Positions 29,410-64,000 of a stretch of 64,000 nucleotides of DNA are shown here, piece by piece. The DNA comes from Macrostomum lignano. Its lineage: Eukaryota. Position numbers and translations under genes: made by a program. The stretch is from contig NIVC01000712.1 of assembly GCA_002269645.1 (NCBI GenBank), positions 372,001 to 436,000 on the forward strand. Reading direction: 5' to 3'. Numbering within the stretch: the stretch's first letter is position 1; each line of letters begins with the position of its first letter. Below the pieces are notes generated by a model that ran no database searches, was not told where the DNA came from, and saw nothing but the letters and a program-made list of their open reading frames with translations.

Positions 29410-29910
29410 GCCAGCACCAGGGGCTTTAGCACCAGGGGCTTTAGCACCAGGGGCTTTAGCACCAGGGGCTTTAGCACCAGGGGCTTTAGCACCAGGGGCT
29501 TTAGCACCAGGGGCTTTAGCACCAGGGGCTTTAGCACCAGGGGCTTTAGCACCAGGGGCTTTAGCACCAGGGGCTTTAGCACCAGGGGCTTTAGCACCAG
29601 GGGCTTTAGCACCAGGGGCTTTAGCACCAGGGGCTTTAGCACCAGGGGCTTTAGCACCAGGGGCTTTAGCACCAGGGGCTTTAGCACCAGGGGCTTTAGC
29701 ACCAGGGGCTTTAGCACCAGGGGCTTTAGCACCAGGGGCTTTAGCACCAGGGGCTTTAGCACCAGGGGCTTTAGCACCAGGGGCTTTAGCACCAGGGGCT
29801 TTAGCACCAGGGGCTTTAGCACCAGGGGCTTTAGCACCAGGGGCGCCAGCACCAGGGGCGCCAGCACCAGGGGTGCCAGCACCAGGGGCGCCAGTACCAG
29901 GGGCGCCAGC
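29410..29910. repeat. 15-bp minisatellite AGCACCAGGGGCTTT (main variant) / AGCACCAGGGGCGCC, ~33 copies
   Basis: Direct inspection. Confidence 0.97.
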
Positions 29911-30240
29911 TCTAATTATGGCTTCCTGTCACCAATTGTGGCTTCCCGTCACCTATTTTGGCCCTTCACTTATTTTGGCTTCCCGTTACCTATTTTGGCC
30001 CTTCACTTATTTTGGCTTCCCGTTACCTATTTTGGCCCTTCACTTATTTTGGCTTCCCGTTACCAATTATGGCTTCCCGTCACCAATTATGGCTTCCCGT
30101 CATCAATTATGGCTTCCTGCCATTAATTATGGCTTCCTGTCACCAATTATGGCTTCCCGTCACCAATTCTGGCTTTCCGTCACCAATTATGGCTTTCCTT
30201 CACTTATTTTTGTGTTCCCGTCACCAATTATGGCTTGATA
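29911..30240. repeat. 20-bp minisatellite CAATTATGGCTTCCCGTCAC-type, ~16 copies
   Basis: Paralog of 16610-17432; abuts the 15-mer array at the duplication junction. Confidence 0.9.
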
Positions 30241-30614
30241 TTACAATGCATTTTGGCTTTCCTATTCCAATTTGAGCTAACCCTTCATACAATTTACCTC
30301 ATGTTACCGCTTTTCTATTAATTTATTTCATTAAAATTAGTAGCAAAAAGGAGCAAAATCTAATAGAAAAAATCACAAGAGGCAGCAGCTCTTGAATTAT
30401 GAGTAGTATGATTCAGTTTAATTCGGTTTAGAATTTAGGGGAAATCATTAAAGTATGCTGCACATTTGGAGCGGAATATGCAAAAATTATGGCCTTCAAA
30501 TGGTTGGGATTGTTTAAATGTTTTAAATTTTATTGGCTAAACAACTTTGTACCTTAGAAGTACATTTTTGCGCCATCATAAATTTTAATTTGTTTCACGC
30601 CTGCCTGTAGAGAA

Positions 30615-33600
30615 CTAACGGTAGTACACAAAGGTGCTCCCATCGAGTTCGTAATGCCCAGCCGCCTCAGTCCAGCATTCTTCATCGCTAGAGGACAGAC
30701 TCTCTGGCTCCGTGTCCTCCTCTGCATCATCTATGGCGGCTACAGTCACTAAGACTGGCGAAGCTGGTAGATTCTGGAATTTGAGTTTGCAGTCAAGTTT
30801 CATTGCGGATGTCTAACAGCTGACACACAAATGTCTGACAGCTGACACACACACACATGTCTAACAGCTGACACACAAATGTCTGACAGCTGACACACAC
30901 ACATGTCTAACAGACTGAAACACGGATGTTTAACAGCTGACACACACATGTCTAACAGACTGACACACGGATGTCTAACAGCTGACACACATGTCTAACA
31001 GCTGACACACGGATGTCTAACAGCTGACACACATGTCTAACAGCTGACACACGGATGTCTAACAGCTGACACATATGTCTAACAGCTGACACACGGATGT
31101 CTAACAGCTGACACGCGGATGTCTAACAGCTGACACATATGTCTAACAGCTGACACACGGATGTCTAACAGCTGACACACGGATGTCTAACAGACTGACA
31201 CACGGATGCCAAACAGCTGACACACGGATGTCTAACAGCTGACACACGGATGTCTAACAGCTGACACACATGTCTAACAGACTGACACATGGATGTCTAA
31301 CAGCTGACACACGTGTCTAACAGACTGACACACGGATGTCTAACAGCTGACACACGTGTCTAACAGACTGACACACGGATGTCTAACAGCTGACACACGT
31401 GTCTAACAGACTGACACACGTGTCTAACAGACTGACACACGGATGTCTAACAGCTGACACACATGTCTATCAGCTGACACACGGATGTCTAACAGCTGAC
31501 ACATATGTCTAACAGCTGACACACGGATGTCTAACAGCTGACACGCGGATGTCTAACAGCTGACACACGGATGTCTAACAGCTGACACGCGGATGTCTAA
31601 CAGCTGACACACGGATGTCTAACAGCTGACACATATGTCTAACAGCTGACACGCGGATGTCTAACAGCTGACACACGGATGTCTAACAGCTGACACATGG
31701 ATGTCTAACAGCTGACATACATATGTATAACAGACTGACACACGGATGTCTAGCAGCTGACATACATATGTCTAACAGACTGACACTCGGATGTCTAACA
31801 GCTGACACACGGATGTCTAACAGCTGACACACATGTCTAACAGACTGACACGCGGATGTCTAACAGCTGACACACATGTCTATCAGCTGACACACGGATG
31901 TCTAACAGCTGACACATATGTCTAACAGCTGACACACGGATGTCTAACAGCTGACACATATGTCTAACAGCTGACACGCGGATGTCTAACAGCTGACACA
32001 CGGATGTCTAACAGCTGACACATGAATGTCTAACAGCTGACATACATATGTATAACAGACTGACACACGGATGTCTAACAGCTGACACACGGATGTCTAA
32101 CAGCTGACACACGGATGTCTAACAGCTGACATACATATGTATAACAGACTGACACACGGATGTCTAACAGCTGACATACATATGTCTAACAGCTGACACA
32201 AAAATCTCTAACAGCTGACACACGGATGTACAACATTTTAAACCAATAATTTTAAAGGACCCGAGGGCCGGAGTTATCTGACCCTTGAATTTAGCCACTT
32301 TACCTGTAGGTAAAATTTCACAATGTCCCAGATTTCACTTACAATAGCTGAAGTTGAAGTTGCGGTAAATATCACAAAATTCAGTTTATAGTATAAATAA
32401 TAACTACAGAATAACGCCGGTAAAATAAGCCAGATTTTAATCTAATTTCGCAAGTTCGCTTTCCAATGAGATGTTAATTACAAGCGTATGTTATTATTTA
32501 AAATGGCTGGTATTTTCGCAAAAGTAGAACTTCAGCCAGCAGCTCGTAAACAGTTTATACAGTGTTTACCATCACTGCAGCATGCTCGTCAATTTGATGG
32601 CTACTGGTATGATAGCATTTTTGAGTATAGACGCACGTGCGACTTAACCTTCTCATGATAAACTACGCAATCAATGCATGCACCATACCTGATGAAAGGC
32701 CCCTGAGGCTGCTGTGGAGACTGTGCAATTGGTTTCGCTGCCAAGCTCGTCATCATTCGACTCATCGTACGAGTATAGCGAGGACGACCTTTTCAGTATG
32801 GAGAATCTGACAGCCAGCTTGCAGCCCAGACCGATGGCGGAGGCTGCGAGTGCGAGCAGAAATATGCTGACGAATATTCGCTTGGCGTTCGCGGACGATT
32901 TCCCTGTGCAATTGAAATGAGGCCATTGATTTAAGTGGTATCGGCAGGTAAAATCAGTTCTGCAGTTATTTGATCAACACTCACTTCCAGTTGAGAACTT
33001 GGCTTCAACATCCGGGTACGGCAGGCCTGACTGACTGACGCTGCACCTGACCAGCCAGTCCCGGCTTTCCTGACCTTCGGGCAGCCGAGCCCAGTGAGAG
33101 CTGCTGAAGCCAGTCTGCTGCAGTTGGCATTGGCGAGCTTCTATAATTATTAAATAATTGCTAATAAGCATTGCGATTCCTCTGAACTTACCTGTGCGCT
33201 GCTCATTTTTAGCCGGATGCGGGCCGCTGCACCACCACTGACTTGAGTTAGCCAGCAGCTGTGGCTGACATTCCATACGCTGCACTGCTGTGACGTCACT
33301 CTGACTGTGAGCCATCGATGCTGGATGCTGATCAAGTGGATGACCGTCAGGCAGGGCTCTGTAACGGTTAGTATTTTTCTTGGAATGTAATAATAATATG
33401 AATAATAATTAAAACAATTATAATAATTGAGTACGCCTTGCCACTTTGCCAGATGTGCAACCGACAGCTCAGCCGCAGCTATTGCGGACTGGGGGGTCAC
33501 CACACACACCCTCAATTACCCCAGCTAATGCTGGCACCCATTTTACAGCTGGGTGAACTGAAGCAGTTAAATGTCTTTCTCAATGAAACAAATTATTTCA

Positions 33601-36600
33601 GGCGATCGAGATTCTTCAATTTGTGAGTCCAACGCTCCAACTACTAGACCAAACAATTCTGTCAACTGTTCCGATTTTGAAGGACCAAAAAAGCACTTTG
33701 AAAATATTGGGAGTTAGAATCATATGCAGACAGACAGGGAATCAAAGGGTACCAAATCAGACAGCTGAATTGCAAACAAAAATGCAACTATATACAAATT
33801 CAGTTATTGAAACTTTTTTTGAAAAAAGCTTACCACTTATTGCTGATATGAAATAGAGCTCATTTTTTTGCACTGCAACGTTTTCCTTCACTTGGTCTCT
33901 AAATCTGCCCTCGCATTCCAACGTGCCGTTCAGCATCTCCGCGCTGACCTGGAATCTGAACTGAGACGCCACCGCCACCAGGGTCTGATTTTTGTTCTTT
34001 TTTGTCACAGCTGATTCTAGCTGGAAGTTGTTTAAAGGTCAGCGATAATTGACAGACAGCAGTGAAACTGTACAATTATGTTCAGCAGAAAGTCATGAGT
34101 TCATCTCACATTTGTGCGGTTTTCATCCAGACGCCACTCGGAGCTGGCAGAACTGATGCTGCAGCTGTGATGCAGTGCTGGGTAAGTCGGAGCTGATGTG
34201 ACATTCACAGTGACGCTGCTGCCGCTGACCCACACGGGTGACACCAATACTGACAGACTGGCAGGGGGAACTGAAACATAAGTATGATGAAGTAAATGCA
34301 ATATCAGCTTCCAGAAAACCCATTTTCATTAAATTCTCTCACATAAAATCCCAATAGTCTGCTCAATGCGCTCGGCAGGTCGGTCTGTCAGAAAGCAGCT
34401 GAGCGTCGCATCGTGCATTGCCGAGGTGGCTCTGAGTTTGAACACGGCAGGCTGCGTCTGGCTGTTCAGCTGCCGTTGTAGAGAGTTTTATAAAAAAAAT
34501 TAGCAACGCTTCACACAATTCGAAATCTATTTAAAAAGATTAACTCACCTGTCTCAGTTGATGAGTTGAACCATTGCTGTACTCCAAGAGACAGCCAAGT
34601 GAGCCATCAAGACAGCTCGAAACTGTAAGGTACGCCAAGTTTCCAGCCTTCATGGCTTGCAGGTTTCTAATCGGACATTGCGAACTGTTCATCACGGTGA
34701 GGTTCAGTGGAGCAACAGGACCTAAAAAATCGTCACGTCCTGTCACTCGATTGTTTTAAAAATCAACGCATCAGTTAGAAGTAGGCAGACTGTTAATATT
34801 TTAATAAAGACCTGACAGTTTCATGGCACTCCAACTTAGCGGAACATTCGTCCGGCTCCTGACCAGTATGTACCGAACTGTGCTCTGGAGCAGAAAATAC
34901 CCTTTCTTTTACTTTTATTGAAAGAAGAAATAAATAAACAATGCAATCCCGCACAGGTGCACTACGAGTTTGACAAAAACGTTGCTACCTCGTTGTAAGC
35001 TCTTCCGAGCTGCCTCCAGCGGCTGCTGCTGTTGAAGGCCTCCCAGCTGGCGTCGCACGGATCCTCCAGCTGCAGCTCCAGCGGGAGGCTCGAGGCTCCG
35101 ACCGCTGACACGGGCGAGCCGACCGGAGCTGCTGCGAGCCACTGGCCATCTGCAACACGAGTGCTTGGTTGCTAGCTGGTCTCACACTGTCTCACAGTGC
35201 TAATTAGCTGCTAGCTGGTCTCATACTGTCTCAGAGTGCTAATTAGATGCTAGCTGGTCTCATACTGTCTCAGAGTGCTAATTAGCTGCTAGCTGGTCTC
35301 ATACTGTCTCGGAGTGCTAATTAGATGCTAGCTGGTCTCACACTGTCTCAGAGCGCTAATTAGATGCTAGCTGGTCTCACACTGTCTCAGAGTGCTAATT
35401 GGCTGCTAGCTGGTCTCACACTGTCTCAGAGTGCTAATTAGATGCTAGCTGGTCTCACACTGTCTCAGAGTGCTAATTAGATGCTAGCTGGTCTCACACT
35501 GTCTCAGAGTGCTAATTAGATGCTAGCTGGTCTCACACTGTCTCAGAGTGCTAATTAGATGCTAGCTGGTCTCACACTGTCTCAGAGTGCTAATTAGATG
35601 CTAGCTGGTCTCACACTGTCTCAGAGTGCTAATTAGATTCTAGCTGGTCTGACACTGTCTCATAGTGCTAATTAGATGCTAGCTGGTCTCACACTGTCTC
35701 AGAGTGCTAATTAGATGCTAGCTGGTCTCACACTGTCTCAGGGTGCTAATTAGATGCTAGCTGGTCTCACACTGTCTCAGAGTGCTAATTAGATGCTAGC
35801 TGGTCTCACACTGTCTCAGAGTGCTAATTAGATGCTAGCTGGTCTCACACTGTCTCACAGTGCTAATTAGATGCTAGCTGGTCTCACACTGTCTCAGAGT
35901 GCTAATTAGATGCTAGCTGGTCTCACACTGTCTCAGAGTGCTAATTAGATGCTAGCTGGTCTCACACTGTCTCAGAGTGCTAATTAGATGCTAGCTGGTC
36001 TCACACTGTCTCAGAGTGCTAATTAGATGCTAGCTGGTCTCACACTGTCTCAGAGTGCTAATTAGATGCTAGCTGGTCTCACACTGTCTCAGAGTGCTAT
36101 TTAGATGCTAGCTGGTCTCACACTGTCTCAGAGTGCTATTTAGATGCTATATAGCTGGTCTCACACTGTCTCAGAGTGCTAATTAGATGCTAGCTGGTCT
36201 CACACTGTCTCACACTTTGTGCCCCCGACGCCCTTTGCCTCATCATGCATCATGAGAATGAGTCGGTCAGCGTCACTCACCCCAGTCTCGCACGCTCACT
36301 GCCTCCAGCATCATCGGCTGCCTCATCTGCATCACAAGCCACCGAGGCCCGGACCGCACAGCAGCAGGGAATCGGTTTGTCTCTGACTGCCGACTCTCCC
36401 ACCAACGGCAGTGCGCACCGCTGGGTTGCCAGGTGCGCAGAACGTCAGCCCTGCTCAGCTGCACTGTCACTGCAACATGTTTATTGAAAAGAACTCAAAT
36501 TTCGTGTCCAGCGCATTGAGAACGGTTTAGATAAATGGTTTGCTTTAAGTTCTTAACCAAAATTTTTCAGCTTACGATTTTCGTTGTCTTGTGTGCAGTT

Positions 36601-36672
36601 TGAGAACGCCTTGAGGACCTGCAGACTGAGAACGAGAAATAGCAGAGGCTTCCTGCACCGCTGGTAAGCCAT
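30615..36672 (-). CDS. Family X receptor, copy X_B, 12 exons, 601 aa: signal peptide, discoidin/F5-8-like, Ig-like domains, TM, acidic Tyr-bearing tail
   Basis: Exons 36576-36672, 36281-36469, 34989-35149, 34812-34884, 34549-34721, 34343-34469, 34110-34270, 33834-33984, 33192-33358, 32985-33117, 32689-32903, 30615-30773 total 1806 bp with all phases compatible and no stops. SP MAYQRCRKPLLFLVLSLQVLKAFS; TM IFVSIFLLALAASAIGLGCKLAV. Domain labels by resemblance only. Confidence 0.85.
30805..32232. repeat. 22-bp minisatellite (with 18/19-bp deletion variants) in the last intron of X_B
   Basis: Direct inspection. Confidence 0.95.
33385..33652 (-). mobile_element. Degraded CORE-type SINE at the position paralogous to 20420-20710
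   Basis: Shares CACCCATTTTACAGCTGGGTGAACTGAAG and the (AAT)n tail; the tRNA head is eroded. Confidence 0.65.
35170..36212. repeat. 39-bp minisatellite, ~27 copies (X_B intron 2)
   Basis: Direct inspection. Confidence 0.97.
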
Positions 36673-37655
36673 TTATCTGGGCGTTGCAGGTTATTCACAA
36701 ACTGATTCACTGACCGTTGAAAGCGTCATGGCTGAAAATCGTTACCATTTTTAATTGATTTCATACAGGTGTTTTACGCAGAAACGACTGGTCTTGGACT
36801 GGTTAATTCCGAGTGGGTGTCTCTGCAGTCACTAGGTCTAAAATAAGTATACAGCCATCTAAATTGGGTTTAATATAATTATATTTAAAATTTCTTGGAT
36901 TCAGTTGAAATGAAACTTGATCCAAATTGGATCGCTACTTGTTGATAATTTCGTCTCCGAAAGCGGCCAAATTGACTGTAATTGGATTGCAAGCACATGT
37001 AAACCAGGGGTCCAACACATCCGAGATAGTTTGTGTATTTATATTAGCAGTTCAGTTGAAGAAAATATTACGCCCTCGAATATTTACGCTTGTAGCTATT
37101 AATAAAAAGAGAGTTTTCTGTCCAAAAAACTATCCTAAGGTCATCAATATACTATTTTCGCTTAATTTTTTTACGATTAATTTTACTGAAAGTAGTAATG
37201 AAGGTAAAAAAATTGACAGTAAATAAATAAAAATGTACAATGGCCATAAAGTAAAGTAAAAAATATAGTATGGTGCAGTCTCTATTTTATTTGACTTACA
37301 TGAAAATTTTTGGGTTATGCATCGCGTTTGAGCGAATGATGGAAAATCGTAGATGCCAGTAACTACGAGCTACTAAATTTGCACGAATTTAAAAACCCAA
37401 TGAAAAATATACCTTAAAAATTGACAAATTTACAACAATCGTAAAAAAAAAGTTAAAAAAGTACGTGTTCCACTTTCATTTTTTGTCACTAACAGTGGAA
37501 TTTATTAACTTTAAAAGCGCAAATATTTGTACATGTATACATACATACATACATGTACACCGCCGCAAAAGAAAGCAAAAGGAAAAGGGGGCAGCAAAAA
37601 CGGAAGAGCAAAAAAAGGGGGAAAGAAACGGAAATGTGAGAGCGTGGCGGCAGTG

Positions 37656-40600
37656 TCAGAGCACTCTCCTTCTGGCTTGCTCCCTTAAGGCAGCCGCAGC
37701 GTTGGTCTGGCCGATGACACCGGCGTCAGCCAGCAGGCAGTCCACGTACCGGCGCGTCCTGGCCTGCCCTCGGCGCCAGGGGCCCCGCAGCGTGAGCAGC
37801 AGGACGTCCTGCACCGGTTCAGGGCAGTAGGTTTCCGCGCGGATCACGTGGCCCGCCAGCTGCAGCCGCCGCCGCCGGATGGTCTCGCTGGGTGGTCGCA
37901 GGCCGGCTCGTCGGTAGAGGGCCGCGTTCGAGACCACCTCAGGGTAGGAGATGCCGAAGGCCGCGCGCAGCAGGCTGGAGTGGGCCGCGTCCAGCCGCTT
38001 CTCCAGCGTCTCGGTCAGCGTCCACGTCTCGGCGTTGTAAGTCAGGACGGTCTCGACCACCGCCTGAAACAGCCGAGACCTCAGGCGATCTGGCAGCGCG
38101 GCGCTCTGCAGAACAACCCGGACTGAGCGGAAGGCCGCCCAAGCCAGGCCTCTGCGTCGCGCCAGGTCCTCCTGAACGCTGGGCACCAGACCGCCGAGGT
38201 ACGTGAAGCGCGTGCAGCGGGGTAGAGGGGCCGCGTGACCGTCTGCGCCGCGGCAGGTGATATTGGCAGGCAGCTCCGCTGGCACCGTCAGGACCTCCGT
38301 CTTGTCGGTGATAACAACCAGGCCGACCGTAGCCGCTATCGCCACCAGGCTGTCCAGCATCCGCTGGGCTCCATCCGCCGTGGAGGCCAGCAGCGCCAGG
38401 TCGTCGGCATAGCCCAGCAGCGACAGTCTCTTCTCTGGATGGCGGCTGCTCGTGCGCCTGCACAGCATGAAGCCGTCGGCGTCGGATGGAAGCGCAGTCC
38501 GCAGCACCCAGTCGAGGACCAGCACGAACAAGAAGGGCGCTAGCGTGTCGCCCTGCAGCACTCCAGATGTTGTACTGAATGGGTCCGACAGCCCGTCGGG
38601 CGTCACCACGGCGGCTTGAGTGTCCTGGTAGAGCGCCATGACTGCGCTGACCAGGCGCTGGGGCACGTGGTAAGCCCGGAGCACCGGCACAAGGGCGCCG
38701 CGCGCCACCGAGTCGAACGCCTTTCTGAAGTCAACGAAGACACAGATCAGCGTCGCCTGGCGGGTGCGCGCCTCCTCGATTGTCCTCCTGAGGGCAAGGA
38801 TCTGGGTCGCTGTGCCCCGGTGTGGCCGGAAGCCGTTCTGCTCGTGCCGCAGAAACGGGTCCAGCACCGGTTGCAGCCGCGTCAGCAGGATCTTGTTGAA
38901 GAGCTTCGCGGCGCAAGACATCAGCGAGATGCCCCTATGTTCTTCTTTCCGAGTTGTGCCGGGCTTCTTTGGGATGGGGATCATGTGGGCCGTCGTCCAC
39001 TCAGTTGGGGCTGCACCCCCGTCAAGTACGCGGTTCATCACACCGGCGACCGCACGGGCCACCGGCAGGACTCGCAGCGCCTCGACAGGGATCTCATCCG
39101 GGCCGGCCGCTCTTCCACCAGGGGACTTCTTCGCCTGCAACACCACCTCGTCCAGAGTAATGGGGCTGACGTCGAAATCCTCCTCCTTGGGCAGGGCCAC
39201 TTCCGGCGGCAGCGGCATCTCCGCCTGCAGCACCGGCGGCGGCGCGTTCACGATGGCGCCGAAAAAGTCCCGCAGCTCGTTCCGGCGGGCCTCCGCCGTG
39301 TCGCCGGGGAGGTTGAGGCTCGTGCGGCTCTTCCTCCCGGTCAGCGCGTTCACAGCGCTCCACACGGCGCGGCGCTTGCCGTCGTGCCCTGCCGTTGTCA
39401 CCGTCCTGATGGTCTCTTCTACGGCGGCCTGTTGTCCTTGCTCATAGGCGGCTGCGAGGGCCGCCTCGGCTTCGTCCACCTCCGCAGTCCTGCCCGCCCG
39501 TCGCAGCTGCTCAAGCCTCAGCCTCGCACTTTGCACTTCCGGGTCCACCTCCCAGACCGGCCGACCTTTCTGCAGGGGCTTCACCAACGGTAGGGTCCAC
39601 TCCGCAGCAGATTGGACGGCCGTGCAGATCTCGGGGTAGTCGGCTTCCTTCTTGCCGTCGAGGGCATCCACAAACGCGCGGGCGAAGCGAACCTGGGTCG
39701 CATCGTCACGCAGAGCCCGGAAGAAGTGCTTCGGCTTCCGCTTGGGCGGCCGGTAGAGCGGGTCCTTCAGCTTGATGTCGCAGAAGAGCAGCTTGTTGTC
39801 GGACTTCGGCGCCAATGGCATGATGGTATCGCAGTTGGTCACACGGCCACGCTCTCGAAAGTGCAGCAGCACGTGGTCCAGCTGCGCCAGCCTCGTCGTG
39901 GCATTCCGGCGGCGGTTGTTGTTGCGCCGCGGCCGCTTGCAGCCGGCAAAGGTTGCCAGCCGCTGCTCGGGTTTCCGGAACCACGTGTTCATCGACACCA
40001 TGTCATGCCGAGCCACGAAGTCGGTCAGCGCCTCGTTGTTGGCATTCTCGCGCGGGGTCACGAAGGGGGCCCGGTCTGACCTGCGCATGACAGCGTTCAG
40101 ATCACCGAGCACGATCACCGTGTCCCGTTGTGCCACAGCCTCCACCTGCCCGGACAAGAACTCGAAAAAGACACGAGCTTCATCGGGGTGGGCAGCTGTC
40201 GGCGCGTAGGCGCAGAAAATGTGGGCGCTCCGACTCCTCAGCCGCAAGTCGATCCGCAGCAGCCGAGGGGACAGGCTCTGGCAGCACACACTCTGTTGCA
40301 GCTTTGGCCCGGCCAGCACTCCTACTCCTCCATGACCTCTCTCGTCCGCTGATGTGTACAGGAGGCTCCAGCCAGCTCCCAGCTCTTCACGCTGGAGGCC
40401 GGGGCCGGCCACGATAGACACCTCCTGCAGAGCCACCAGGTCCATCTTCGTCTCCTGAGCCAGCTTTGCCAGCAGGCCCTGGCGCCAGTTCTCCTTGAGG
40501 GTCCGGCAGTTCCAGGTTGCCAGCCGAAGGGGTGCTCTGGTACGGCTGGGGCCCGATGCTGTTGGGCCTCGTGGTCCCCGGCGCCACCCGGAGGATCCAG

Positions 40601-40769
40601 GGCCTCGGCCTCCCGCCTGCCTGCGCGCTTTGCTGCTCCATGGGCACGACTGCGCCGGTTGCGCTCTCTGCGCCGCTGGGTGCGGCGGGCAGCACTGCGC
40701 TGGCCGCGGGGGGTCTTGGCCTTGCCGCTGTTGGCTGCCGCAGCTTGAGGGCGCGGCACTCCAAGCCAA
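37656..40769 (-). CDS. LINE ORF2: apurinic endonuclease plus reverse transcriptase (1037 codons open, no upstream AUG)
   Basis: LATWNCRTL, LQEVS, VLGDLNA, LDHVL; RGISLMS, QNGFRP, FVDFRKAFDSV, GVLQGDTLAPFLF, YADDL, FTYLGG. Confidence 0.95.
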   Translation of the reverse strand: MAWSAAPSSCGSQQRQGQDPPRPAQCCPPHPAAQRAQPAQSCPWSSKARRQAGGRGPGSSGWRRGPRGPTASGPSRTRAPLRLATWNCRTLKENWRQGLLAKLAQETKMDLVALQEVSIVAGPGLQREELGAGWSLLYTSADERGHGGVGVLAGPKLQQSVCCQSLSPRLLRIDLRLRSRSAHIFCAYAPTAAHPDEARVFFEFLSGQVEAVAQRDTVIVLGDLNAVMRRSDRAPFVTPRENANNEALTDFVARHDMVSMNTWFRKPEQRLATFAGCKRPRRNNNRRRNATTRLAQLDHVLLHFRERGRVTNCDTIMPLAPKSDNKLLFCDIKLKDPLYRPPKRKPKHFFRALRDDATQVRFARAFVDALDGKKEADYPEICTAVQSAAEWTLPLVKPLQKGRPVWEVDPEVQSARLRLEQLRRAGRTAEVDEAEAALAAAYEQGQQAAVEETIRTVTTAGHDGKRRAVWSAVNALTGRKSRTSLNLPGDTAEARRNELRDFFGAIVNAPPPVLQAEMPLPPEVALPKEEDFDVSPITLDEVVLQAKKSPGGRAAGPDEIPVEALRVLPVARAVAGVMNRVLDGGAAPTEWTTAHMIPIPKKPGTTRKEEHRGISLMSCAAKLFNKILLTRLQPVLDPFLRHEQNGFRPHRGTATQILALRRTIEEARTRQATLICVFVDFRKAFDSVARGALVPVLRAYHVPQRLVSAVMALYQDTQAAVVTPDGLSDPFSTTSGVLQGDTLAPFLFVLVLDWVLRTALPSDADGFMLCRRTSSRHPEKRLSLLGYADDLALLASTADGAQRMLDSLVAIAATVGLVVITDKTEVLTVPAELPANITCRGADGHAAPLPRCTRFTYLGGLVPSVQEDLARRRGLAWAAFRSVRVVLQSAALPDRLRSRLFQAVVETVLTYNAETWTLTETLEKRLDAAHSSLLRAAFGISYPEVVSNAALYRRAGLRPPSETIRRRRLQLAGHVIRAETYCPEPVQDVLLLTLRGPWRRGQARTRRYVDCLLADAGVIGQTNAAAALREQARRRVL

Positions 40770-40825
40770 CCTTGGCTATGCTCCGGGGCGATGCTCTGCC
40801 CAGGGGTGCCAGGAGGTCGCGGCAT
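40322..40825 (-). CDS. Putative short Arg-rich ORF1 of the LINE, overlapping ORF2
   Basis: ATG at 40825 directly inside the element 5' end; RSAARRTQRRRERNRRSR basic tract. Confidence 0.45.
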   Translation of the reverse strand: MPRPPGTPGQSIAPEHSQGWLGVPRPQAAAANSGKAKTPRGQRSAARRTQRRRERNRRSRAHGAAKRAGRREAEALDPPGGAGDHEAQQHRAPAVPEHPFGWQPGTAGPSRRTGARACWQSWLRRRRWTWWLCRRCLSWPAPASSVKSWELAGASCTHQRTREVMEE

Positions 40826-40844
40826 ATTTATACGCCAGGGGCGT

Positions 40845-41180
40845 ATAAATAAGATGGCTCATAAATAAGATGGCTCATAAATAAGATGGCTCATAAATAA
40901 GATGGCTCATAAATAAGATGGCTCATAAATAAGATGGCTCATAAATAAGATGGCTCATAAATAAGATGGCTCATAAATAAGATGGCTCATAAATAAGATG
41001 GCTCATAAATAAGATGGCTCATAAATAAGATGGCTCATAAATAAGATGGCTCATAAATAAGATGGCTCATAAATAAGATGGCTCATAAATAAGATGGCTC
41101 ATAAATAAGATGGCTCATAAATAAGATGGCTCATAAATAAGATGGCTCATAAATAAGATGGCTCATAAATAAGATGGCTC
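40845..41180. repeat. 16-bp minisatellite ATAAATAAGATGGCTC, ~21 perfect copies
   Basis: Direct inspection. Confidence 0.98.
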
Positions 41181-41563
41181 GTACATGTACATGTATAATG
41201 AGGGATAAAAGTATGAATAATGCATAACAGAAATTTGAAAATGCTTGCTTTTACAATGAGGCCGAGGGCAGCTTTTACAACAAAAGTTCACAATGGGCAA
41301 AAATTAAAAATTCAATATTGTGATTATAATGCAAATCGAAGTAAAAATATTCATCGTAAACCTTCACTGGTGGTGATAAAATTGACGATACGCTAGCGTA
41401 TACTAAATAACCCATGTTGAGTTGAGTCTACAGTGGACTCTGAAAAGTCACCAGCCATTATTTTAGAAATAATGAACAAAACACACAAAATATTAATGCA
41501 TCTTGGTTTCGTTTCAAATTCTGTAGACTTTCTAATTTTTCGTGCACATTTTTGTGTAAGCGT

Positions 41564-41878
41564 CAGGGGCGTCGCCACCGGGGGAAAAGGGGGACATGTC
41601 CCCCCAGTAAAAGTTTTGCCAATGCCAATGCTTTGATCCCCCACGCCACTTTTGTCGACTCGTTGTGGAAATCGAAAATTTTGCTTCAGGGCGACAAAAC
41701 AAAAAAGACCAAAAAAGGCCTGCGGCGCTAAAACGAGTGCCTGTGACGTCAAAATAATCGCTGACAAAACCGATTCTGAAAATAGTGTACATGTAGAAAT
41801 TTAGTCATGAACATGTACGTGTAGAATTATTGGCTTGGTCTCTCTCTCTCCTCCATAAAATCCATGGCGAAGCCCCTG
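41564..41878. mobile_element. hAT-type MITE, copy in unit B
   Basis: TIR CAGGGGCGTCGCCA / TGGCGAAGCCCCTG (13/14 match); 8-bp TSD GTAAGCGT at 41556-41563 and 41879-41886. Confidence 0.82.
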
Positions 41879-42000
41879 GTAAGCGTTAAGCCTAGCTTGA
41901 AGAGAAAGGATCGCGGGTATGAAATTATGACAGTGATGTTAGAATAAATCTCGTACAACAGACTTGGACAGTGTAACTGTTAGTCGCATGGAACCTCGAT

Positions 42001-44068
42001 TCATACATGTACGAACTTCAACTGCATGAGACTTATTTGCTCACTCTGTGAGTCATTGATATGAAACGGTGTTTTTATAGAACGCACGGTGCTAGGACTT
42101 GAGCTTCTTTGACTCGCTGATGAGTGGCAATGGAGCACAAAAAGTACGAGACCGAGTACGAGTGAAATTGTGACTACTACGGCGCTAGCAAGCCCGATGA
42201 ACAAAGCGATACTAGGCTGCCAGCCAGTGGCTTTTGTATTCGCAATAACCGTCGTGCCATTAATTGAACTTGCTGAGCTCATCACGGCTGAGCTTTTTTT
42301 CATCTGCTTTAATATTTGGATCATCTCTTTCGAGTAGCCGTGCGTGCAGCTCGCAGTCTCCGGTAAGCTCAGCAGCGACAGCATCGGGCTGCTGCAGTCA
42401 ACGAACTCGACCACAGGTCTGTCTGATTCAGCAAGTATCAGAGTGGCACACCTGCCAGTAGTAGACTCTGGCGGCACTCTGGTCATAAAAGAAACAATTT
42501 TTAACGAAATTTAATACTCAATTTTATGTGAACTAAGAGCAATAAGTTTTACTTGAAGTCGGCGGGTAGCTGAATTGGTAGGCAACCATTGTCCCTCTTG
42601 GACATAAAGGACATCACGGTTTTGTCAGTCTTGAGAAACATGCCTAGACGCAACGGCTGGCTCAGACTCAGGGGCCGTCTGTACGGGATTTCCTTAAGCT
42701 TGGCTTCGTCTAAAATTGAAATTAATAATCTGATTTGATTATTTCATTACACTATTGGCGTTTGCCATTAGCTTGAACTGCTCACTAGCAGCGATGAACT
42801 GACTGATATCACTTGAGTTCTCGAAGCTGGCTAGCTGCACACCGCCTCTGATGTTTAACAGGCTGGTTTGAATGTCCTGCGGCACTTTTGTGACATAGTA
42901 GCAACTGCCTCTAAAGTTGAGCATGTCGAAGGCGCAGTGCCCGCTGCTGGGCAGCACAATTCTCAGGCCCACTGCACTGGCTGACTCAGCTTTCGAGTCC
43001 TTTGTTGATTCTACGACGATGTAGGCTCTATTTTGGGTTTGAGGAAATTGCTCCATCAGAGCGATATTTTGAGTCTTTTAATGGTTTAGTTTCTATTCAA
43101 AGGACTTTTACTGCCTCTGGACAAGAGACAGGGGTTTCAGCACCAGGGGTTTTGGCACCAGGGGTTTTAGCACCAGGGGTTTTAGCACCAGGGGTTTTAG
43201 CACCAGGGGCGCCAGCACCAGGGGCGCCAGCACCAGGCGCGCCAGCACCAGGGGCGCCAGCACCAGGGGCGCCAGCACCAGGGGCGCCAGCACCAGGGGC
43301 GCCAGCACCAGGGGCGCCAGCACCAGGGGCGCCAGCACCAGGGGCGCCAGCACCAGGGGCGCCAGCACCAGGGGCGCCAGCACCAGGGGCGCCAGCACCA
43401 GGGGCGCCAGCACCAGGGGCGCCAGCACCAGGGGCGCCAGCACCAGGGGCGCCAGCACCAGGGGCGCCAGCACCAGGGGCGCCAGCACCAGGGGCGCCAG
43501 CACCAGGGGCGCCAGCACCAGGGGCGCCAGCACCAGGGGCGCCAGCACCAGGGGCGCCAGCACCAGGGGCGCCAGCACCAGGGGCGCCAGCACCAGGGGC
43601 GCCAGCACCCTAGGTCTGCAGACTCTAGACCCAAAGAGTACCGAAAACGGAATTCCTATTCTTCTCTGTTACTTTATCGGAAGATTCTCAGGCAATAACT
43701 AATCATATGAAATACAAAATATTGTATTCGGAATTACTGACCCAGGTCGCAGGGTGACGGCTTGAACGAATCCAGCTACCAAATCGATATTAGTCGGAGA
43801 TCCATCGGACCACCTTATGGTGACTGAGAGCTTGGCTTTGATCTGGCTTCGAATGGCATCTCCGATAGGCAGCCCTATTAAATAGATCGTGATGGGTTCT
43901 TTAACGTCACGAAACCGAACTTCCCATCGACAGTGCCTGTTTGCGGTTCTTTTCTCTCCAGCTTCGTCTTGGGTCGTTGGCAGCAGTTTTTCGTCACGGT
44001 TGTAGTAGCCGTCCATCTCTATTTTGACAGTGTGCTCATCCACACAGTGGTAATTGGCTGTATAAACA
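42001..44068 (-). CDS. Family Y receptor, copy Y3 (CUB-like, C-type-lectin-like, TM); 5' signal exon not resolved
   Basis: Exons 43742-44068, 42786-43027, 42553-42709, 42001-42478 are phase-compatible and open. HCVDEHTVKI..HCRWEVRF; HCAFDMLNFRGSCYYV..QLASF; LRLGM; RCATL..DCSSPM; TM IALFIGLASAVVVTISLVLGLVLFVL. Confidence 0.78.
43135..43610. repeat. 15-bp minisatellite AGCACCAGGGGCGCC (main variant), ~31 copies
   Basis: Direct inspection; paralog of 29410-29910. Confidence 0.97.
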
Positions 44069-55789: not shown

Positions 55790-56078
55790 GAATAATAGTA
55801 ATAATTATAATTATAATAACTGGTTACACCTGCCCTAATGGGCAGATGTGCAACCGACAGCTCAGCCGCAGCTGCATATGAAGGCAGCATAAAGGCTGCA
55901 TACGGCGAAGGCTGTGTAATGCCCAGCTAATGCTAGCACCCATTTTACAGCTGGGTGAACTGCAGCAATACAGAGTTAAGTGTCTTGCTCAAGGAAACAA
56001 ATTGTTCCAGTGGGATCGGGAATTGAACTCCCGACCTTCAAGTCGTGAGTTCGACGCTCAAACCACTAGGCTAAAACC
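55790..56078 (-). mobile_element. Best-preserved tRNA-derived CORE-type SINE
   Basis: Minus strand: TAGCCTAGTGG A box, GTTCAATTCC B box, CCTTGAGCAAGACACTTAACTCTGTATTGCTGCAGTTCACCCAGCTGTAAAATGGG, (TAAT)n tail. Confidence 0.82.
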
Positions 56079-57397: not shown

Positions 57398-60300
57398 TTA
57401 ACTGCGAGCAGTCTGCATGGAGTGGCTGTCAAAGGCAGAGTAATTCACAAAGGTGCACCCATCGGTGTCGTAGTGACCCGCCGCTTCGGTGAACTGCGGC
57501 AAATCCTCCTCGCCGTCGCTGCTGGAATCTTCGACACTTTCCTCTCTGGCTAGCAAGATGTTGGTCACTGTGACGAACTCGAACCGATGTCTGTCCTGCT
57601 CAAGAAAAATTAAACTGTTTGGTTATACTCGCAGGACGAAAAGGAAACAGAAAAAAAGGTTTTTACGACAGACTTTAACGAGAAATACGATTTACTTGCT
57701 TGGACTCTGCAGATTTTAAAGTTCTAAAGAAAATAGAAAGCAACAGCTTCTTATGCTTTTCAACGTGTACTTATGTGTATAATGTGCGTCTGGAATTGCT
57801 GAGATGTCGAGGCTTACTAGGGGAATTGCTGAGATGTCGAGGCTTACTGGGGGAATTGCTGAGATCTCGAGGCTTACTAGGGGAATTGCTGAGATCTCGA
57901 GGCTTACTAGGGGAATTGCTGAGATGTCGAGGCTTACTAGGGGAATTGCTAAGATATCAAGGCTGAGAGGTAAGAATTGCTACTGGTAGTTTATTCAAAA
58001 AGTTTTATTCCATCTTTGAAGAAATTTACTCAAATAAGGTGAGTTATTAAACTGAAAAAAGGAACGCTTTTAAGAAAACATGCTTTTATTTTAAAGGATT
58101 CTCATTATGGCGCTCTGAAGGGGGGACACTAGGCTGCTAGTATTTTCTATATTTATCTATCTAGTTAAGTTCTGTGTCTAAATCAGCTCTCACTTTGGTC
58201 TGAAAACCATAAAACTTTTCGCCAGAAATTAGATGAAAGCATTTTTTGACACTAACGTGTAAAAATTCTGCATCATATTCAAATTCACTAAAGGCAACTT
58301 TATTCTATGTAGCTCTTACGCTCGTACGAGGTAACACTGTCACAGACTGTCTAAACGCAACAAGCGTACACAGGCACGCAGTCGTACCCCATTTCACTGA
58401 CCCCTGATAAGTACGAAGACGTACACAGTACATGTACAGCGTAGAAATACGTACGAAGACAAGGTTGTATTGCAGCCTTGACTTTATCTACGCTCTCTGT
58501 TCAAAATTATTATGGACACGCGCAGACACGAATACAGGACTAAGTCCTATGCGATATCTCTCCCCGCTTCACTGCCCTGGTAGCTCTCATCACTATACTG
58601 AAAGCGAGGCAAACCAAGGCAAACTCCATAAAGTGAAAGCATTTGCGATAAACTTACCTGCAGACTAGAGCCATCGCTTGCTTCACTTGTTCCTCCGTCA
58701 GCAGCGCTTGCTGGGGCACAATCTGATACGGTTTCGAACGATTCCTCGTTCTTCCGGTCACACGACACGGCTGAAGCTGTTGCCGCGAAAGCCCAGATGC
58801 TGAGGCAGATAGCAACCAAAAACGCTAGCGTGAGGCCCGCTGCTAGCAGAGCGGAAACGCCAATATCTGCAACCCCCCCTCAAAAGTTCAAGCTGGTTTT
58901 AGTTTAATGACTTTAACCACGAGTTTCCCGTTGGCAGCACTGCTGCCGCAGCTCATATATACTTGCCTCCCGTAGCTGGGGAGACTGCAATTCAACCATT
59001 CTTGACTCTAAATAATTCGGCCCCACAGATTTGAGTTGTGAATGAAAAAAATAATGCTCACCATCTTTACCAACCGGCTGTTGGTTTAAAGATTTGCACT
59101 GCAGCGACTCAAAGACAGTCAATCCAGTGTAGGCTTGGTGACTGGAGCAGCAGACGTTCACAGATGAGCCGTTCCATTTCACTTTCAGTAAGCCATGCCA
59201 CTCAGTGCTGCTGATATTTCTCAGCTCTGTCGATGCCTCATCTGCCGCAACTGAGCAGTTGATGCTGTAGACCGGAAGTAGTCCTTTTTGTTTTTTATTT
59301 TGATCAACTGCATGCACGTGAACTACAGACTGGCTGTTACTGACGTAGGCTAACGCGAGTTCAAGCGTTGACTTGCTGGCTTGGCCTTGAGGTTTTTTCA
59401 ATGGCAAGAAAGATTCGACTTTTGATTTTCTTTCAATTCAATTGAGTCGCAACATCAAATTCCATGATCAGACTCAAAGCGGCTAAAATGACTCACTAAA
59501 AACAGCTGGTGCACTGCTCAGACTGCTCTCTGAGTCAGTGTGCTCAACTCCAGACTGGTTGACGCTGCACAAAACCTGCCAATTCTGACGGGCCATCGCC
59601 TCGACTACTCGAAGCTCGTGAGTACTGTTGAACTCACCCTGCTGTAATCAAAATTGGTGCACAGGTGAAGACAGCTGACATATTCTAGACCTGAATGAAG
59701 TTTGTTGATTGAGATTACCAAAGGTGATTTTCACTCACTTGCACTTTCTGAAGCGGTGTGCTGACTGCAGCGTCAGCATTCAGTTTCAGCCAGCAGCTGT
59801 GGCTCACATTCCAGATGCTGCAGCGCTTAGAGATCACCTGAACCAGCTTGATCTGCCCCACCAGCCAGAATTTCTCCGGTCCCAAGTCCACGGCTGTCTC
59901 GCAGGGCTCTGAAAGATGAAGCATAGGCTGATGATACATACTTTTTTTCAGACTTGTCAGGGTGGTCAAGAGGTCTTTAGGAGCCAATGAGGACCACACG
60001 GAGTATGCCAGGTTCTCAAGAATGTCAGCGAATAAACAAAAAATCCTGTTAATTTTTTTATTCTTCTTTGCGCCATTATCATATTTTCTCTAAGAGTTAT
60101 GATATGCATACCACTGATTTCTGAAATGATTCCAGTCCAAGCAGTTTCCTTCCTTTCTGATCCAGCAGTTCCTTTGCACACGATGTCGGCATTTCTATCA
60201 GCCATCGATACATTAAAACTGAACCCTGAGCGCACTCTGACGAGTGTTCTGTTCGTGCTGTCGATGGTTTTTGACTGGCTCTGAAATTGAAAATCAATAA

Positions 60301-62343
60301 TCAAAGTTCATTTCCGACCGACTGCCGGCAATTCACTCAGAATTTTCAGGACATTACAGTGCTGAGAAGAGTGAGGTTTCGAATTCGCTGCGACCCCAGA
60401 CTCTCGATGAAGCAGCGGTGCTGAGCCTCAGGCAGGGAGTCTGAGAACACGCTGAGCTTTGCCAGCTGCCCAGCAACTAGGACTGACAAAGCTGAGACGT
60501 GCAGAGCTTTGACTGAAACTAAAAATAAATATGTTTAACATGGCGTTAAATAAAAAGCTTCAAATTTAATCTGAGATTGTCAACGGTACACCTGAGTCTG
60601 CGACTCCATCTACCGCTTAACTTCAGTAGCAATATGATCTGCAGTTCAATCACCGCACAGCTCAGAAAAACAAAAGAAGAGCACCTTCCCACAACAGAAG
60701 CTTCTCAAGCATAACAGCGCCATGAGAAGTGCTCAAGCCGCACTGCAGCAGCTTGCCGTGGTCATCAGGGAGAGTTCTAATCTCGAACTTGTGAGTTCGA
60801 ATCTCATTGACAACAGCTGGAGATGAGCCAACCTGAAGACAGTTGAGAACTTTCGTAGCCTACTGAATGCACAATCAAATGCATGCTTGAAAGCATGGAA
60901 GCTCACCAGCGGGGCGCTGACAATTCTTCCAGAAGAATCGGAAAGACAGCAGGCGGCCTTATCGAAGCTGCAGCTGTCTAGGAAGAACAAAGAAGTCGAA
61001 TGTTGAACTTCTTCGCTGACGAAGAGGCCGAGCCGATAGGAGAGCAGGTGACTGGACCGGTTCATGCTGATGCGCATCAATGCATGGCGGCCTGGAAATA
61101 TTTATTGTCAATAGAAAACAGACTAAATGAGATCAGCAAAGTGAAATTAGCAAACTTTCCTGAGATATTTATGGCCTGCCAATCAAGCGAACTCTCGCTG
61201 AGTAGCCGGATGAACGTTGTCAAAACCTGAAGTGCAACATGATTGGCCTGAGGCGGCAATAAAATCAAACATTTGCTGCACCTGCCTCACCGCTTGGCCA
61301 CGTCCGACCTGCCTCCAGCGGCTGCTGCTGTTGAAGGCCTCCCAGCTGGCGTCGCACGGATCCTCCAGCTGCAGCTCCAGCGGGAGGCTCGAGGCTCCGA
61401 CCGCTGACACGGGTGAGCCGATCGGAGCTGCTGTGTGCCACTGGCCATCTGCAACACGAGTGCTTGGCTGCTAGCTGGTCTCACACTGTCTCAGAGTGCT
61501 AATTAGATGCTAGCTGGTCTCACACTGTCTCAGAGTGCTAATTAGATGCTAGCTGGTCTCACACTGTCTCAGAGTGCTAATTAGATGCTAGCTGGTCTCA
61601 CACTGTCTCAGAGTGCTAATTAGATGCTAGCTGGTCTCACACTGTCTCAGAGTGCTAATTAGATGCTAGCTGGTCTCACACTGTCTCAGAGTGCTAATTA
61701 GATGCTAGCTGGTCTGACACTGTCTCAGAGTGCTAATTAGATGCTAGCTGGTCTGACACTGTCTCAGAGTGCTAATTAGATGCTAGCTGGTCTGACACTG
61801 TCTCAGAGTGCTAATTAGATGCTAGCTGGTCTCACACTGTCTCAGAGTGCTAATTAGATGCTAGCTGGTCTCACACTGTCTCAGAGTGCTAATTAGATGC
61901 TAGCTGGTCTCACACTGTCTCACACTTTGTGCCCCCGACGCCCTTTGCCTCATCATGCATCATGAGAATGAGTCGGTCAGCGTCACTCACCCCAGTCTCG
62001 CACGCTCACCGCCTCCAGCATCATCGGCTGCCTCAGCTGCATCACAAGCCACCGAGGCCCGGACCGCACAGCAGCAGGGAATCGGTTTGTCTCTGACTGC
62101 CGACTCTCCCACCAACGGCAGTGCGCACCGCTGGGTTGCCAGGTGCGCAGAACGTCAGCCCTGCTCAGCTGCACTGTCACTGGAAAATTTATCGAAAAAG
62201 ATTTGCAGCCTTGTTTTGCCAGCCTTTGAGCTGCCCCTAAAAGCAGCTGACTCACCCGTGCGATTCACAGCGGAGCAGTCCAAAGATGCAGCAACTCGCA
62301 TGCTCAGCAGCAGAGGCAGCAATCGCCAAAGCGAAATTTTCAT
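57398..62343 (-). CDS. Family X receptor, divergent copy X_C, 13 exons, 772 aa (requires a GA-AG intron 4)
   Basis: Exons 62256-62343, 61991-62179, 61291-61448, 61160-61226, 60907-61091, 60685-60832, 60358-60482, 60112-60280, 59739-59908, 59497-59641, 58918-59385, 58658-58866, 57398-57595 total 2319 bp, open and phase-compatible. SP MKISLWRLLPLLLSMRVAAS; Ig-like DDHGKLLQC; TM IGVSALLAAGLTLAFLVAICLSIWAF. Confidence 0.78.
57791..57965. repeat. 30-bp minisatellite GGAATTGCTGAGATGTCGAGGCTTACTAGG, ~5.5 copies (X_C last intron)
   Basis: Direct inspection. Confidence 0.92.
61472..61922. repeat. 39-bp minisatellite, ~11.5 copies (X_C intron 2)
   Basis: Same unit as at 22246 and 35170. Confidence 0.97.
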
Positions 62344-63474: not shown

Positions 63475-64000
63475 TACATGTACATATCGTCGCAGAAAAA
63501 ATAGAAGCCGGCCCAATTCTCACTCCGCAAAGGTCTCAGCAACAGCAGCTGGTAGCAGTTTTCAACAGCAACGGAACCTGGGCAACAATAATAGCAGTAT
63601 ACGTTGTCAGCCAGTCTCAGCGAGTCAAGAGGCAAAGACAACGTAACAGGGCACGTTTCAGGGCCTGGGCGCAAACGTACATGTATGCCTCACCATCGGC
63701 AGTGTCCAGGGCGCCAGCATCAGCCAGCAGGCAGTCGATGAAGCGCCGAGTGCGCGCCTGTTCCCGCCGGTAGGGTGCCTGCAGCGTGAGCAACAGCACC
63801 TCATGCACCGGCTGCGGGCAGTAGGACTCGGCTCAGATGATATGGCCTGCCAGATGAAGCCTCCGACGGCGCAACAGTTCGCTGGGACGGGACATGCCGG
63901 TGCGGCGATAGAGTGCGGCATTGCTGACGTGCTTGAAGCTAATCTTGAAGGCGGTGCACAGCAGGCCAGCGTGCGCCGCATCGACCTGCTGTTCGAGCGA
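63475..64000 (-). mobile_element. 3' end of a second, diverged RTE-like LINE (continues beyond the window; contains a stop codon)
   Basis: VSNAALYRRTG..RRRRLHLAGHII-stop-AESYCPQPVHEVLLLTL..QARTRRFIDCLLADAG aligns with the ORF2 C-terminus at 37656-38000. Confidence 0.85.

Follow-up and report, generated by a model that had tools for sequence, protein, structure and literature searches.

The 64,000-nucleotide stretch of the Macrostomum lignano genome analysed here (assembly GCA_002269645.1, contig NIVC01000712.1, positions 372,001 to 436,000; hereafter the window) carries three minus-strand genes of one family, X_A, X_B and X_C, which share the same orientation and each contain a 39-bp minisatellite array in intron 2. 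A block comprising exon 2, intron 2 with its minisatellite and most of exon 3 (~140 of 158 nt), referred to as the cassette, is nearly identical in these genes, and its evolution is the subject of this study. X_A and X_B are carried by the two units of a ~13 kb tandem duplication (16600-29900 and 29900-43600) that is ~87% identical (17.1-23.4 kb versus 29.9-37.2 kb), and X_C is located 26-39 kb from them (57.4-62.3 kb, minus strand). The X_A cassette (22061-22718) consists of exon 2 at 22530-22718, the array at 22242-22461 and exon 3 at 22061-22221; the X_B cassette (34989-36469) has exon 2 at 36281-36469, the array at 35170-36212 and exon 3 at 34989-35149. The arrays hold 5.6, 26.6 and 11.6 copies in X_A, X_B and X_C, respectively (Tandem Repeats Finder).

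In X_C, the coding part of exon 1 (62256-62343) encodes the signal peptide MKISLWRLLPLLLSMRVAASLDCSAVNRT and the first base of a split codon, ends at a GTGAGT donor, lies outside the block and matches the M. lignano protein model P0001 at 100%. It is followed by the 76-nt intron 1 (62180-62255), which is divergent among paralogs, and by the 189-nt exon 2 (61991-62179), the 5' coding half of the cassette. Intron 2 comprises a 5' flank from its GTGAGT donor to the array (61923-61990), the array itself (61469-61922, + strand unit TGCTAGCTGGTCTCACACTGTCTCAGAGTGCTAATTAGA) and a 3' flank from the array to the acceptor (61449-61468). Exon 3 (61291-61448) contributes positions 61309-61448 to the cassette. 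The remainder of the gene (57410-61226), referred to as the body, is made up of exon 4 (starting at 61226), exons for an immunoglobulin (Ig)-like ectodomain, a transmembrane exon (about 58550-58879) and a C-terminal tail exon (57410-57568).

The translated exons of the window match Macrostomum lignano protein models at 100%. The X_A product corresponds to P0006 (the signal peptide and cassette were compared directly, and tblastn matched the C-terminal exon at 100%) and the X_B product to P0007 (exon 1 and C-terminal exon at 100%, tblastn). All X_C body exons were found with open reading frames (tblastx, tblastn). Exon by exon, the X_C body reaches 60-87% identity with P0031 and P0030, whereas even the best exons are only about 40% identical to X_A; in the best-conserved body exons, X_C and X_A are 54% identical at the nucleotide level, with a nonsynonymous divergence (dN) of 0.54 and a synonymous divergence (dS) of ~3. 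X_C is a real diverged paralog that belongs to the P0030/P0031 clade.

Comparison of the window with itself (BLASTN) revealed that positions 61303-62198 match X_B (35004-36490) at 96.9-97.7% and X_A (22076-22727) at 96.6-98.4%. At E<1e-5 no other match to the X_A/X_B region was found around X_C, with the exception of one interspersed repeat. The block proper spans 61303-62179, with weak similarity as far as 62198. Alignment with MAFFT placed its 5' edge at the exon 2 acceptor (AG at 62180-62181, exon 2 beginning at 62179) and its 3' edge at 61303-61309 within exon 3, corresponding to 22076 in X_A and 35004 in X_B; this is 4-6 codons ahead of the end of exon 3 in X_C, and 7 codons ahead of it in X_A and X_B. 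By global alignment, X_C and X_A are 97.0% identical in both halves of the cassette, compared to 64% in the flanks (400 nt upstream, 600 nt downstream), a level that amounts to no real alignment. A first-pass annotation of this DNA had described a shared block with abrupt loss of similarity at 61309-62182, and such a block is indeed present; the 61309 end agrees with the observed 3' edge, while 62182 is 3 nt off the exon 2 start.

Either side of the block, the genes are dissimilar. Exon 1 and intron 1 of X_C are colinear with their X_A/X_B counterparts but unalignable, the signal peptides differ (MKISLW... in X_C versus MACWRCRK... in X_A/X_B), exon 4 is divergent (VLTTFIRLLSESSLDWQAINISG versus STVRYILVRSRTNVPLSWSAMKLSG) and the last codons of X_C exon 3 (..VGRGQA) are typical of the X_C clade. 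Within the block, the exon 2 peptide of X_C is identical to that of X_A, and X_B carries one change (L to M). The identity of the exon 2 peptides and the unlike exon 4 and signal peptides had all been described correctly in the first-pass annotation.

The pattern was found to extend across the gene family, and is thus larger than the one-off swap assumed earlier. A protein search with the X_A product as query identified 26 M. lignano family proteins. In those covering the region, the peptide encoded by exons 2 and 3 is nearly constant, with bodies only 31-45% identical; P0037 is the one family protein that covers the cassette region without the near-identical block. In total, 14 genomic copies were compared, consisting of the three in the window and 11 in loci L001-L004 on four other contigs of the same assembly; these extra loci were obtained via four NCBI-annotated family proteins only, and a look-up of contig records encoding P0002 and P0003 found none. 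All 11 further copies hold exon 2, a 39-mer array and exon 3, with exon 3 of L002_3 truncated and degenerate. The block occupies the same position in 14/14 copies. In the 14-copy alignment, mean pairwise identity is 0.1-0.5 upstream of exon 2 and 0.95-1.0 from the first exon 2 base in every copy. Exon 2 has a mean pairwise identity of 97.2%; the noncoding 5' flank of intron 2 is 94% identical, with two haplotypes of which X_C has the rarer, and the 3' flank 99% identical over 13 copies. Identity in exon 3 is 0.91-0.98 and then decays to 0.84, 0.71 and 0.26 over the last ~50 nt. The 5' edge is therefore abrupt, and at the 3' edge similarity fades gradually within exon 3.

Two of the genomic copies show individual peculiarities. 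In L002_3 (L002:38085-38560) the array is short and exon 3 is far more diverged than in the other copies, as would be seen in a copy that no longer takes part in the exchange. L002_5 (L002:55687 region) has a 5-bp gap in exon 2 that causes a frameshift, either as a pseudogene or through a long-read indel error. No relatives outside M. lignano were found among 1.84 billion representative proteins; a bacterial match, P0035, was discarded as a low-complexity match to S/T-rich repeats.

The cassette is uniform at the level of DNA. Over 66 pairs its mean dS is 0.051 and its mean dN 0.049, and X_C and X_A differ in the cassette by a dN of 0.004 and a dS of 0.04. Gene conversion as proposed in the first-pass annotation predicts that synonymous and intronic sites of the tract are less diverged than those elsewhere, and this is what was observed: tract sites of both kinds are almost undiverged (cassette dS 0.05) next to saturated body exons (~3). 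The tandem-duplicate pair provides an internal control: identity between X_A and X_B rises from 89-93% in the flanks to 97.0% in the cassette (global alignment). The X_C-X_A cassette identity equals that of X_A and X_B despite 64% identity in the flanks, which argues for DNA exchange and not for selection.

Site patterns in the cassette are mosaic. All four gametes are present in 145/351 informative site pairs, including pairs that straddle the array, and segment and gene relationships are incongruent for X_C, L002_2 and P0008/L002_5. The cassette hence combines similarity above that of its flanks, homogenised silent sites and mosaic site patterns, three of the features expected under segmental concerted evolution. 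Furthermore, G+C content at third codon positions is higher in the cassette (0.79) than in the body (0.57), as is G+C content in the cassette intron flanks (0.57) compared to other introns (0.44-0.47); both differences lie in the direction expected under GC-biased conversion.

Haplotypes near the 3' end of the cassette reveal a local exchange involving X_C. Among the genomic copies, only X_A, X_B and X_C read GAC...AAC AGC AGC AGC (D..NSSS) at this position, and among proteins the motif occurs only in P0006, P0007 and P0009. P0030 and P0031 of the X_C clade, as well as the A/B-like P0008 and L002_5, have R..GSSD; the remaining copies have CGC...GGC AGC AGC GAC or close variants, and L004_1 has the D codon without NSSS. 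The 3' haplotype of X_C is thus specific to A/B and foreign to the X_C clade, in agreement with the earlier proposal of a transferred segment. A few codons past D..NSSS, X_C reverts to the clade-type ending VGRGQA, which places the conversion edge between the NSSS codons and 61303-61309, with the junction 145 bp past the array. The cassette distance of X_C to X_A and X_B is 7-8 differences per 413 nt, the smallest among pairs with different bodies (mean 20).

The shared D..NSSS and the smallest cassette distance indicate that X_C has exchanged cassette DNA with the X_A/X_B lineage. The donor of the X_C patch was probably of the A/B type, since D..NSSS is common to X_A and X_B (~11% apart elsewhere) and to the related P0009; from this we infer a direction from A/B to C. 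Finer assignments made in the first-pass annotation hold in part. Diagnostic sites were said to match X_B in the intron flank, where X_C and X_B do share a 4-site haplotype, but L004_1 has the same one. They were said to match X_A in the exons, where two sites in exon 2 turn out to be private changes of X_B; the HT codons of exon 3 are common to X_C and X_A, but also to three other copies, and D..NSSS is shared by X_C with both X_A and X_B.

Taken together, the data argue for recurrent interlocus gene conversion keeping the cassette near-identical among paralogs, to which we assign a probability of roughly 80% on the basis of the sequence comparisons. The homogenisation, its DNA-level character, the mosaicism and the family-wide edges are seen directly in the sequences. 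In the mechanism that we infer, the cassette would evolve in concert through ectopic (interlocus) homologous recombination, mostly gene conversion, that copies it among paralogs. This would hold its synonymous sites and intron flanks at ~95-99% identity and leave the signal peptides, the other introns and the body exons free to diverge. Identity sufficient for strand invasion and re-annealing would then persist in the cassette alone, confining exchange to this region, and the cassette edges would be set where homology ends, with the 5' edge adjoining a fast-evolving short intron. The abruptness of that edge can be explained by consideration of the conversion tracts, which must end in homology: the short, unconstrained intron 1 offers none. 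It can be speculated that conversion templated by partly spliced cDNA is the cause of the edge at the exon 2 acceptor, which would require retention of intron 2.

Several points weigh against recurrent conversion. Recombination is deduced from the sequences of one species, with no event seen directly. The 5' edge is exactly the splice site in 14/14 copies, and is explained by argument alone. A test resembling the pairwise homoplasy index was only marginal (p = 0.045). There is no general effect of proximity, with cassettes within and between clusters showing 20.5 versus 20.3 differences, and the X_A/X_B/X_C trio alone stands out for within-cluster similarity. Two substitutions in exon 3 are private to X_C, and X_A, X_B and X_C are still ~3% apart, which suggests that the last exchange was not very recent. 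Finally, polishing of the Mlig_3_7 assembly could over-homogenise similar copies and blur single diagnostic sites, and mis-joins in the arrays could mimic the chimeric 5' modules of L002 and L003 described below.

In the minisatellite itself, one dominant 39-mer accounts for 119 of about 180 units over 13 arrays (those of 12 cassette loci and one unrelated gene), and other variants are mostly private to one array; X_C, for instance, has three copies of a private variant of its own. Array length among loci ranges from about 2 to 34 units. The array is central in every block, and identity drops with distance on the 3' side, while the 5' edge is abrupt. An additional 39-bp array of ~27 units with its own private variant (L001:4510-5578) is present in an intron of a CUB/lectin-like gene, 5 kb upstream of an X gene. 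It is possible, if somewhat doubtful, that the 39-bp minisatellite initiates the exchange, as the first-pass annotation had supposed: array variants are private per locus and without shared polarity, and the flanks of the array in the CUB/lectin-like gene are unlike those of the cassette and have not been homogenised. Similarity to the CUB/lectin-like gene is also seen in the fused models P0009, P0012 and P0037, in their N-terminal parts.

Outside the window, chimeric genes were observed with junctions at the cassette. L003_1 (L003:9893-19830) and L002_1 (L002:10237-19500) share 94% DNA identity that begins exactly with exon 2 and extends over the whole body, and have nothing in common upstream, where exon 1 and promoter are unrelated; in its upstream region and exon 1, L003_1 instead matches L002_2. 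L002_2 (L002:18800-24400) in turn combines an L003_1-type exon 1 and proximal upstream region, L002_6-like sequence further upstream, an L002_1/L003_1-type cassette and an L002_6-type body, with L002_1-type sequence extending from the array to 1.3 kb downstream in an otherwise L002_6-type gene. Either real recombinants or mis-joins within arrays could yield these chimeras, which rest on one assembly. If real, they suggest the cassette may act as portable homology, with 5' modules (promoter, exon 1 and intron 1) and bodies being re-paired through junctions inside it.

The first-pass annotation had interpreted the block as a combinatorial mechanism that grafts a ligand-binding tip onto different receptor bodies. 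We find no basis for this, given that the tip is constant in 14/14 genomic copies and in all region-covering proteins except P0037. As the exchanged block is the constant part, exchange erases differences and makes no combinations. Programmed diversification implies an exchanged segment that is variable and ligand-facing; here, the exchanged segment is constant, and variable DNA has been moved only as a side effect, in the 5'-module/body chimeras and one 1.3-kb overrun. A related proposal is that cassette and minisatellite form a dedicated recombination hinge rather than a by-product, whose identity in every gene would let the family reshuffle promoter/signal-peptide modules against Ig-like bodies, expand and contract tandem clusters and keep a common N-terminal module required by every member, e.g. 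for a shared partner. We consider this unlikely; if true, it would constitute a germline or even somatic diversification system for flatworm recognition receptors, with a logic like that of the variant surface glycoprotein (VSG) 70-bp repeats.

Among the explanations that dispense with recurrent conversion, an artefact of assembly or polishing survives best, albeit as an improbable one. It holds that Canu correction, or Pilon supplied with multi-mapping reads, imposed a consensus on the copies, or that mis-joins occurred in the minisatellite. Mlig_3_7 is a Canu assembly that was polished by Pilon with multi-mapping Illumina and RNA-seq reads, and the genome of the DV1 line contains 180-312 Mb of near-identical duplicates (PMC5730564); frameshifts typical of long-read errors are in addition present in P0004, P0019 and P0020, as is the 5-bp gap in L002_5. 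However, polishing merges only copies that are already close enough to cross-map; it can neither raise ~50% identity to 97% nor make similarity end sharply at a splice site at 14 loci. The copies retain private substitutions, private array variants and differing array lengths, and the residues specific to X_A, X_B and X_C recur in UniProt models. For X_C in particular, the end of the patch lies 145 bp from the array within unique sequence, where there is no cause for a mis-join, and R..GSSD reads from many copies would outnumber those of the A/B type, so that polishing would not push X_C towards D..NSSS.

Constraint on the nucleotide sequence for a function other than protein coding (for example an element in splicing or regulation, an RNA that is antisense or structured, or a need for the array itself) is a slightly weaker candidate still. 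It would account for the coincidence of the edges with a splice acceptor and for the retention of the array in every copy, and the unrelated neighbouring gene has an intronic array as well. In contrast, a search of the block against Rfam yielded nothing above threshold (best E = 0.7), the array varies between about 2 and 34 units, variable sites are present and mosaic among copies, dN is about equal to dS with no special protection of silent sites, and the flanks of the array in the unrelated gene are unlike the cassette flanks.

Purifying selection on the N-terminal peptide alone, in the absence of DNA exchange, is very improbable. The peptide hardly varies among about 30 protein models, and the motifs PxWLVxQLxQPM and LPL..EDPC persist even in the divergent P0037. 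However, silent and intron-flank sites are as uniform as replacement sites (block dS 0.05, as low as dN 0.05) while body dS is ~3, which rules against selection at the protein level; the noncoding intron flanks are 94-99% identical, one 39-mer unit dominates every array, and site patterns are mosaic. P0037 encodes a module at 38% identity in the same genome, tolerating 62% replacement, which shows that the protein need not be invariant. As the sole cause, purifying selection is refuted by the synonymous and intronic identity. A mobile cassette, either transposon-borne or a copied exon pair recently inserted in many unrelated or diverged genes by exon shuffling, is equally improbable: the block is discrete, sharp-edged and set in dissimilar DNA of a genome rich in transposable elements, but a search for terminal inverted repeats and target-site duplications at its edges found nothing scoring above shuffled controls, the 3' edge is graded rather than sharp, position and phase are the same in a gene structure homologous on both sides (exon 1 encodes a signal peptide in which ..DCS..NRT is conserved, while on the other side exon 4 still encodes part of the module), and P0037 has an old, diverged version of the module.

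Recurrent interlocus conversion of part of a gene has precedents, and the X cassette is a new instance of segmental concerted evolution rather than a new mechanism of diversification. The closest described case is SmPoMuc, a family of Schistosoma mansoni mucins in which exon 2 and flanking intron are >93% identical across all members, simple repeats are present and ectopic recombination/conversion has been proposed (Roger et al. 2008, PMC2576457). The conserved unit of SmPoMuc is a ~1-kb tandem repeat containing exon 2, with units separated by microsatellites, and the authors found introns homogenised and exons differing between groups (PMC2576457). Both are lineage-specific multigene families of flatworms in which a small exon and an intron flank are homogenised, repeats occur and chimeric genes are found. 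They differ in that the X cassette is single-copy per gene, the tandem repeat being a 39-bp intronic minisatellite, in that X exons and intron flanks are homogenised alike, and in the unrelated proteins encoded, i.e. Ig-like membrane proteins and not mucins.

More distant parallels are found outside flatworms. Slightom et al. in 1980 reportedly described the conversion of a gene segment between the human fetal globin duplicates, with a boundary at a simple-sequence tract of the second intervening sequence, a proposed recombination hot spot. As in the X family, part of a gene including an intron is converted with a repeat at or near the boundary, and flanks keep an older divergence, as seen for X_A/X_B; whereas the globin genes are two recent tandem duplicates with the repeat at the edge, here at least 14 saturated paralogs are involved and the repeat is at the tract centre. 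Jeffreys and co-workers are said to have identified meiotic conversion hot spots at human minisatellites, with allelic, polar exchange measured in sperm. A repeat unit of tens of bp, large length differences and exchange of array and flanks are common to both systems, but X exchange occurs between paralogs, the array variants are private without a polar pattern, and the process is known here from sequence alone. In trypanosomes, the 70-bp repeats upstream of VSG genes provide homology for gene conversion, as part of a programmed, somatic antigenic variation at the expression site. In both cases a constant stretch beside divergent coding sequence lets recombination move variable neighbours; unlike the VSG system, the X evidence is germline-scale with no expression site, and the converted segment is itself constant.

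The cassette represents an unusually clean case of partial concerted evolution, with 0.43 kb plus the array at ~95-99% identity in at least 14 genes that are otherwise saturated, and with edges visible to the base. It could be a tractable system in a transgenic model flatworm, both for minisatellite-initiated exchange and for the role of a constant N-terminal module on variable Ig-like bodies. As a practical consequence, short reads or probes from exons 2-3 are not assignable to a single gene. The family, specific to M. lignano, is uncharacterised; literature searches for it, for its locus tags and for gene conversion in M. lignano brought up no paper.

Gene models of the family are routinely broken at the minisatellite intron. 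UniProt and NCBI models P0001-P0036 are systematically broken or fused at this position, and many begin with 'GQW' (exon 3) or end with 'RDW' (exon 2). P0004, P0019 and P0020 read exon 2 in the wrong frame, P0009 and P0012 are fused to the upstream lectin-like gene, and P0014 covers 77 kb with six cassettes.

The family members are predicted to be M. lignano-specific type I membrane proteins, composed of a signal peptide, an N-terminal module, ~4 Ig-like domains, a transmembrane helix and a cytoplasmic tail. The N-termini in the family are hydrophobic, and the transmembrane and tail exons of X_C could be identified. An AlphaFold model of P0010, built on a 20-sequence family alignment, displays approximately four Ig-like domains at residues about 200-600 with a predicted local distance difference test (pLDDT) score of 75-94, and a helix at 608-636 that corresponds to the transmembrane helix. 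Foldseek matches of this model include SYG-2, ICAM-5, KIT and IgM (E 1e-9 to 1e-12). The region encoded by the cassette has a pLDDT of only 23-35. Pfam searches with six X_C exon translations found no family, and a profile search of PDB sequences with the cassette region yielded chance matches only (E >= 0.24). An assignment to a discoidin/galactose-binding-like jelly roll, suggested by the motifs 'PRWLVMQL' and '..RL....L.W.A.NISG', was likewise rejected as unsupported by the PDB profile search. The term 'ligand-binding tip' used previously hence has no support from the model or from Pfam or PDB matches.

How far the N-terminal module extends downstream is apparent from P0037 (UniRef A0A1I8I804, M. 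lignano), whose module is 38% identical to the cassette product. P0037 is without ~11 residues around the exon 2/3 junction and falls outside the homogenised set. The alignment extends the module through exon 4 (..L.W.A.N[IL].G). As the module continues into exon 4, the cassette encodes less than a full domain, with the tract edge falling within the module; the block is therefore not the whole 'N-terminal domain' it was taken for. In X_C (61155-61226, minus strand), GA and not GT stands at the exon 4 donor position of other family members (..ATCTCAG/GAAAG, with the slash marking the junction). The P0030 and P0031 models splice exon 4 at an internal donor after ..LLSE (GAGA/GTTCGC, last exon base 61193), which omits the conserved 'SLDWQAINISG' end of the module; the A/B-like P0032 is similar.

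The window as a whole is eukaryotic in character, with a G+C content of ~45%, and rich in minisatellites. Arrays of a 20-mer, a 22-mer and a 15-mer are common to both the X_A and X_B units with very different copy numbers. A short interspersed repeat without an open frame, 70-79% identical, is present in the X_A region (20398-20710), in the X_B region (33401-33653) and ~1.3 kb past the X_C 3' end (55791-56078), and provides the sole other similarity of the X_C region to the A/B units. Upstream of X_B, a minus-strand open reading frame (ORF) resembling a long interspersed nuclear element (37656-40769, 1037 aa, 66% G+C) with endonuclease and reverse transcriptase domains has been inserted, which the X_A unit does not have; a fragment 68% similar to it is located upstream of X_C at the window end (63714-63999). 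Between X_A and the beginning of the X_B unit sits a plus-strand long terminal repeat retrotransposon of Ty3/gypsy-like type (25191-28541), with two ORFs encoding reverse transcriptase, RNase H and integrase. A further plus-strand ORF of 385 aa (5205-6362) matches DNase II over its full length (Pfam PF03265, E = 2.6e-52).

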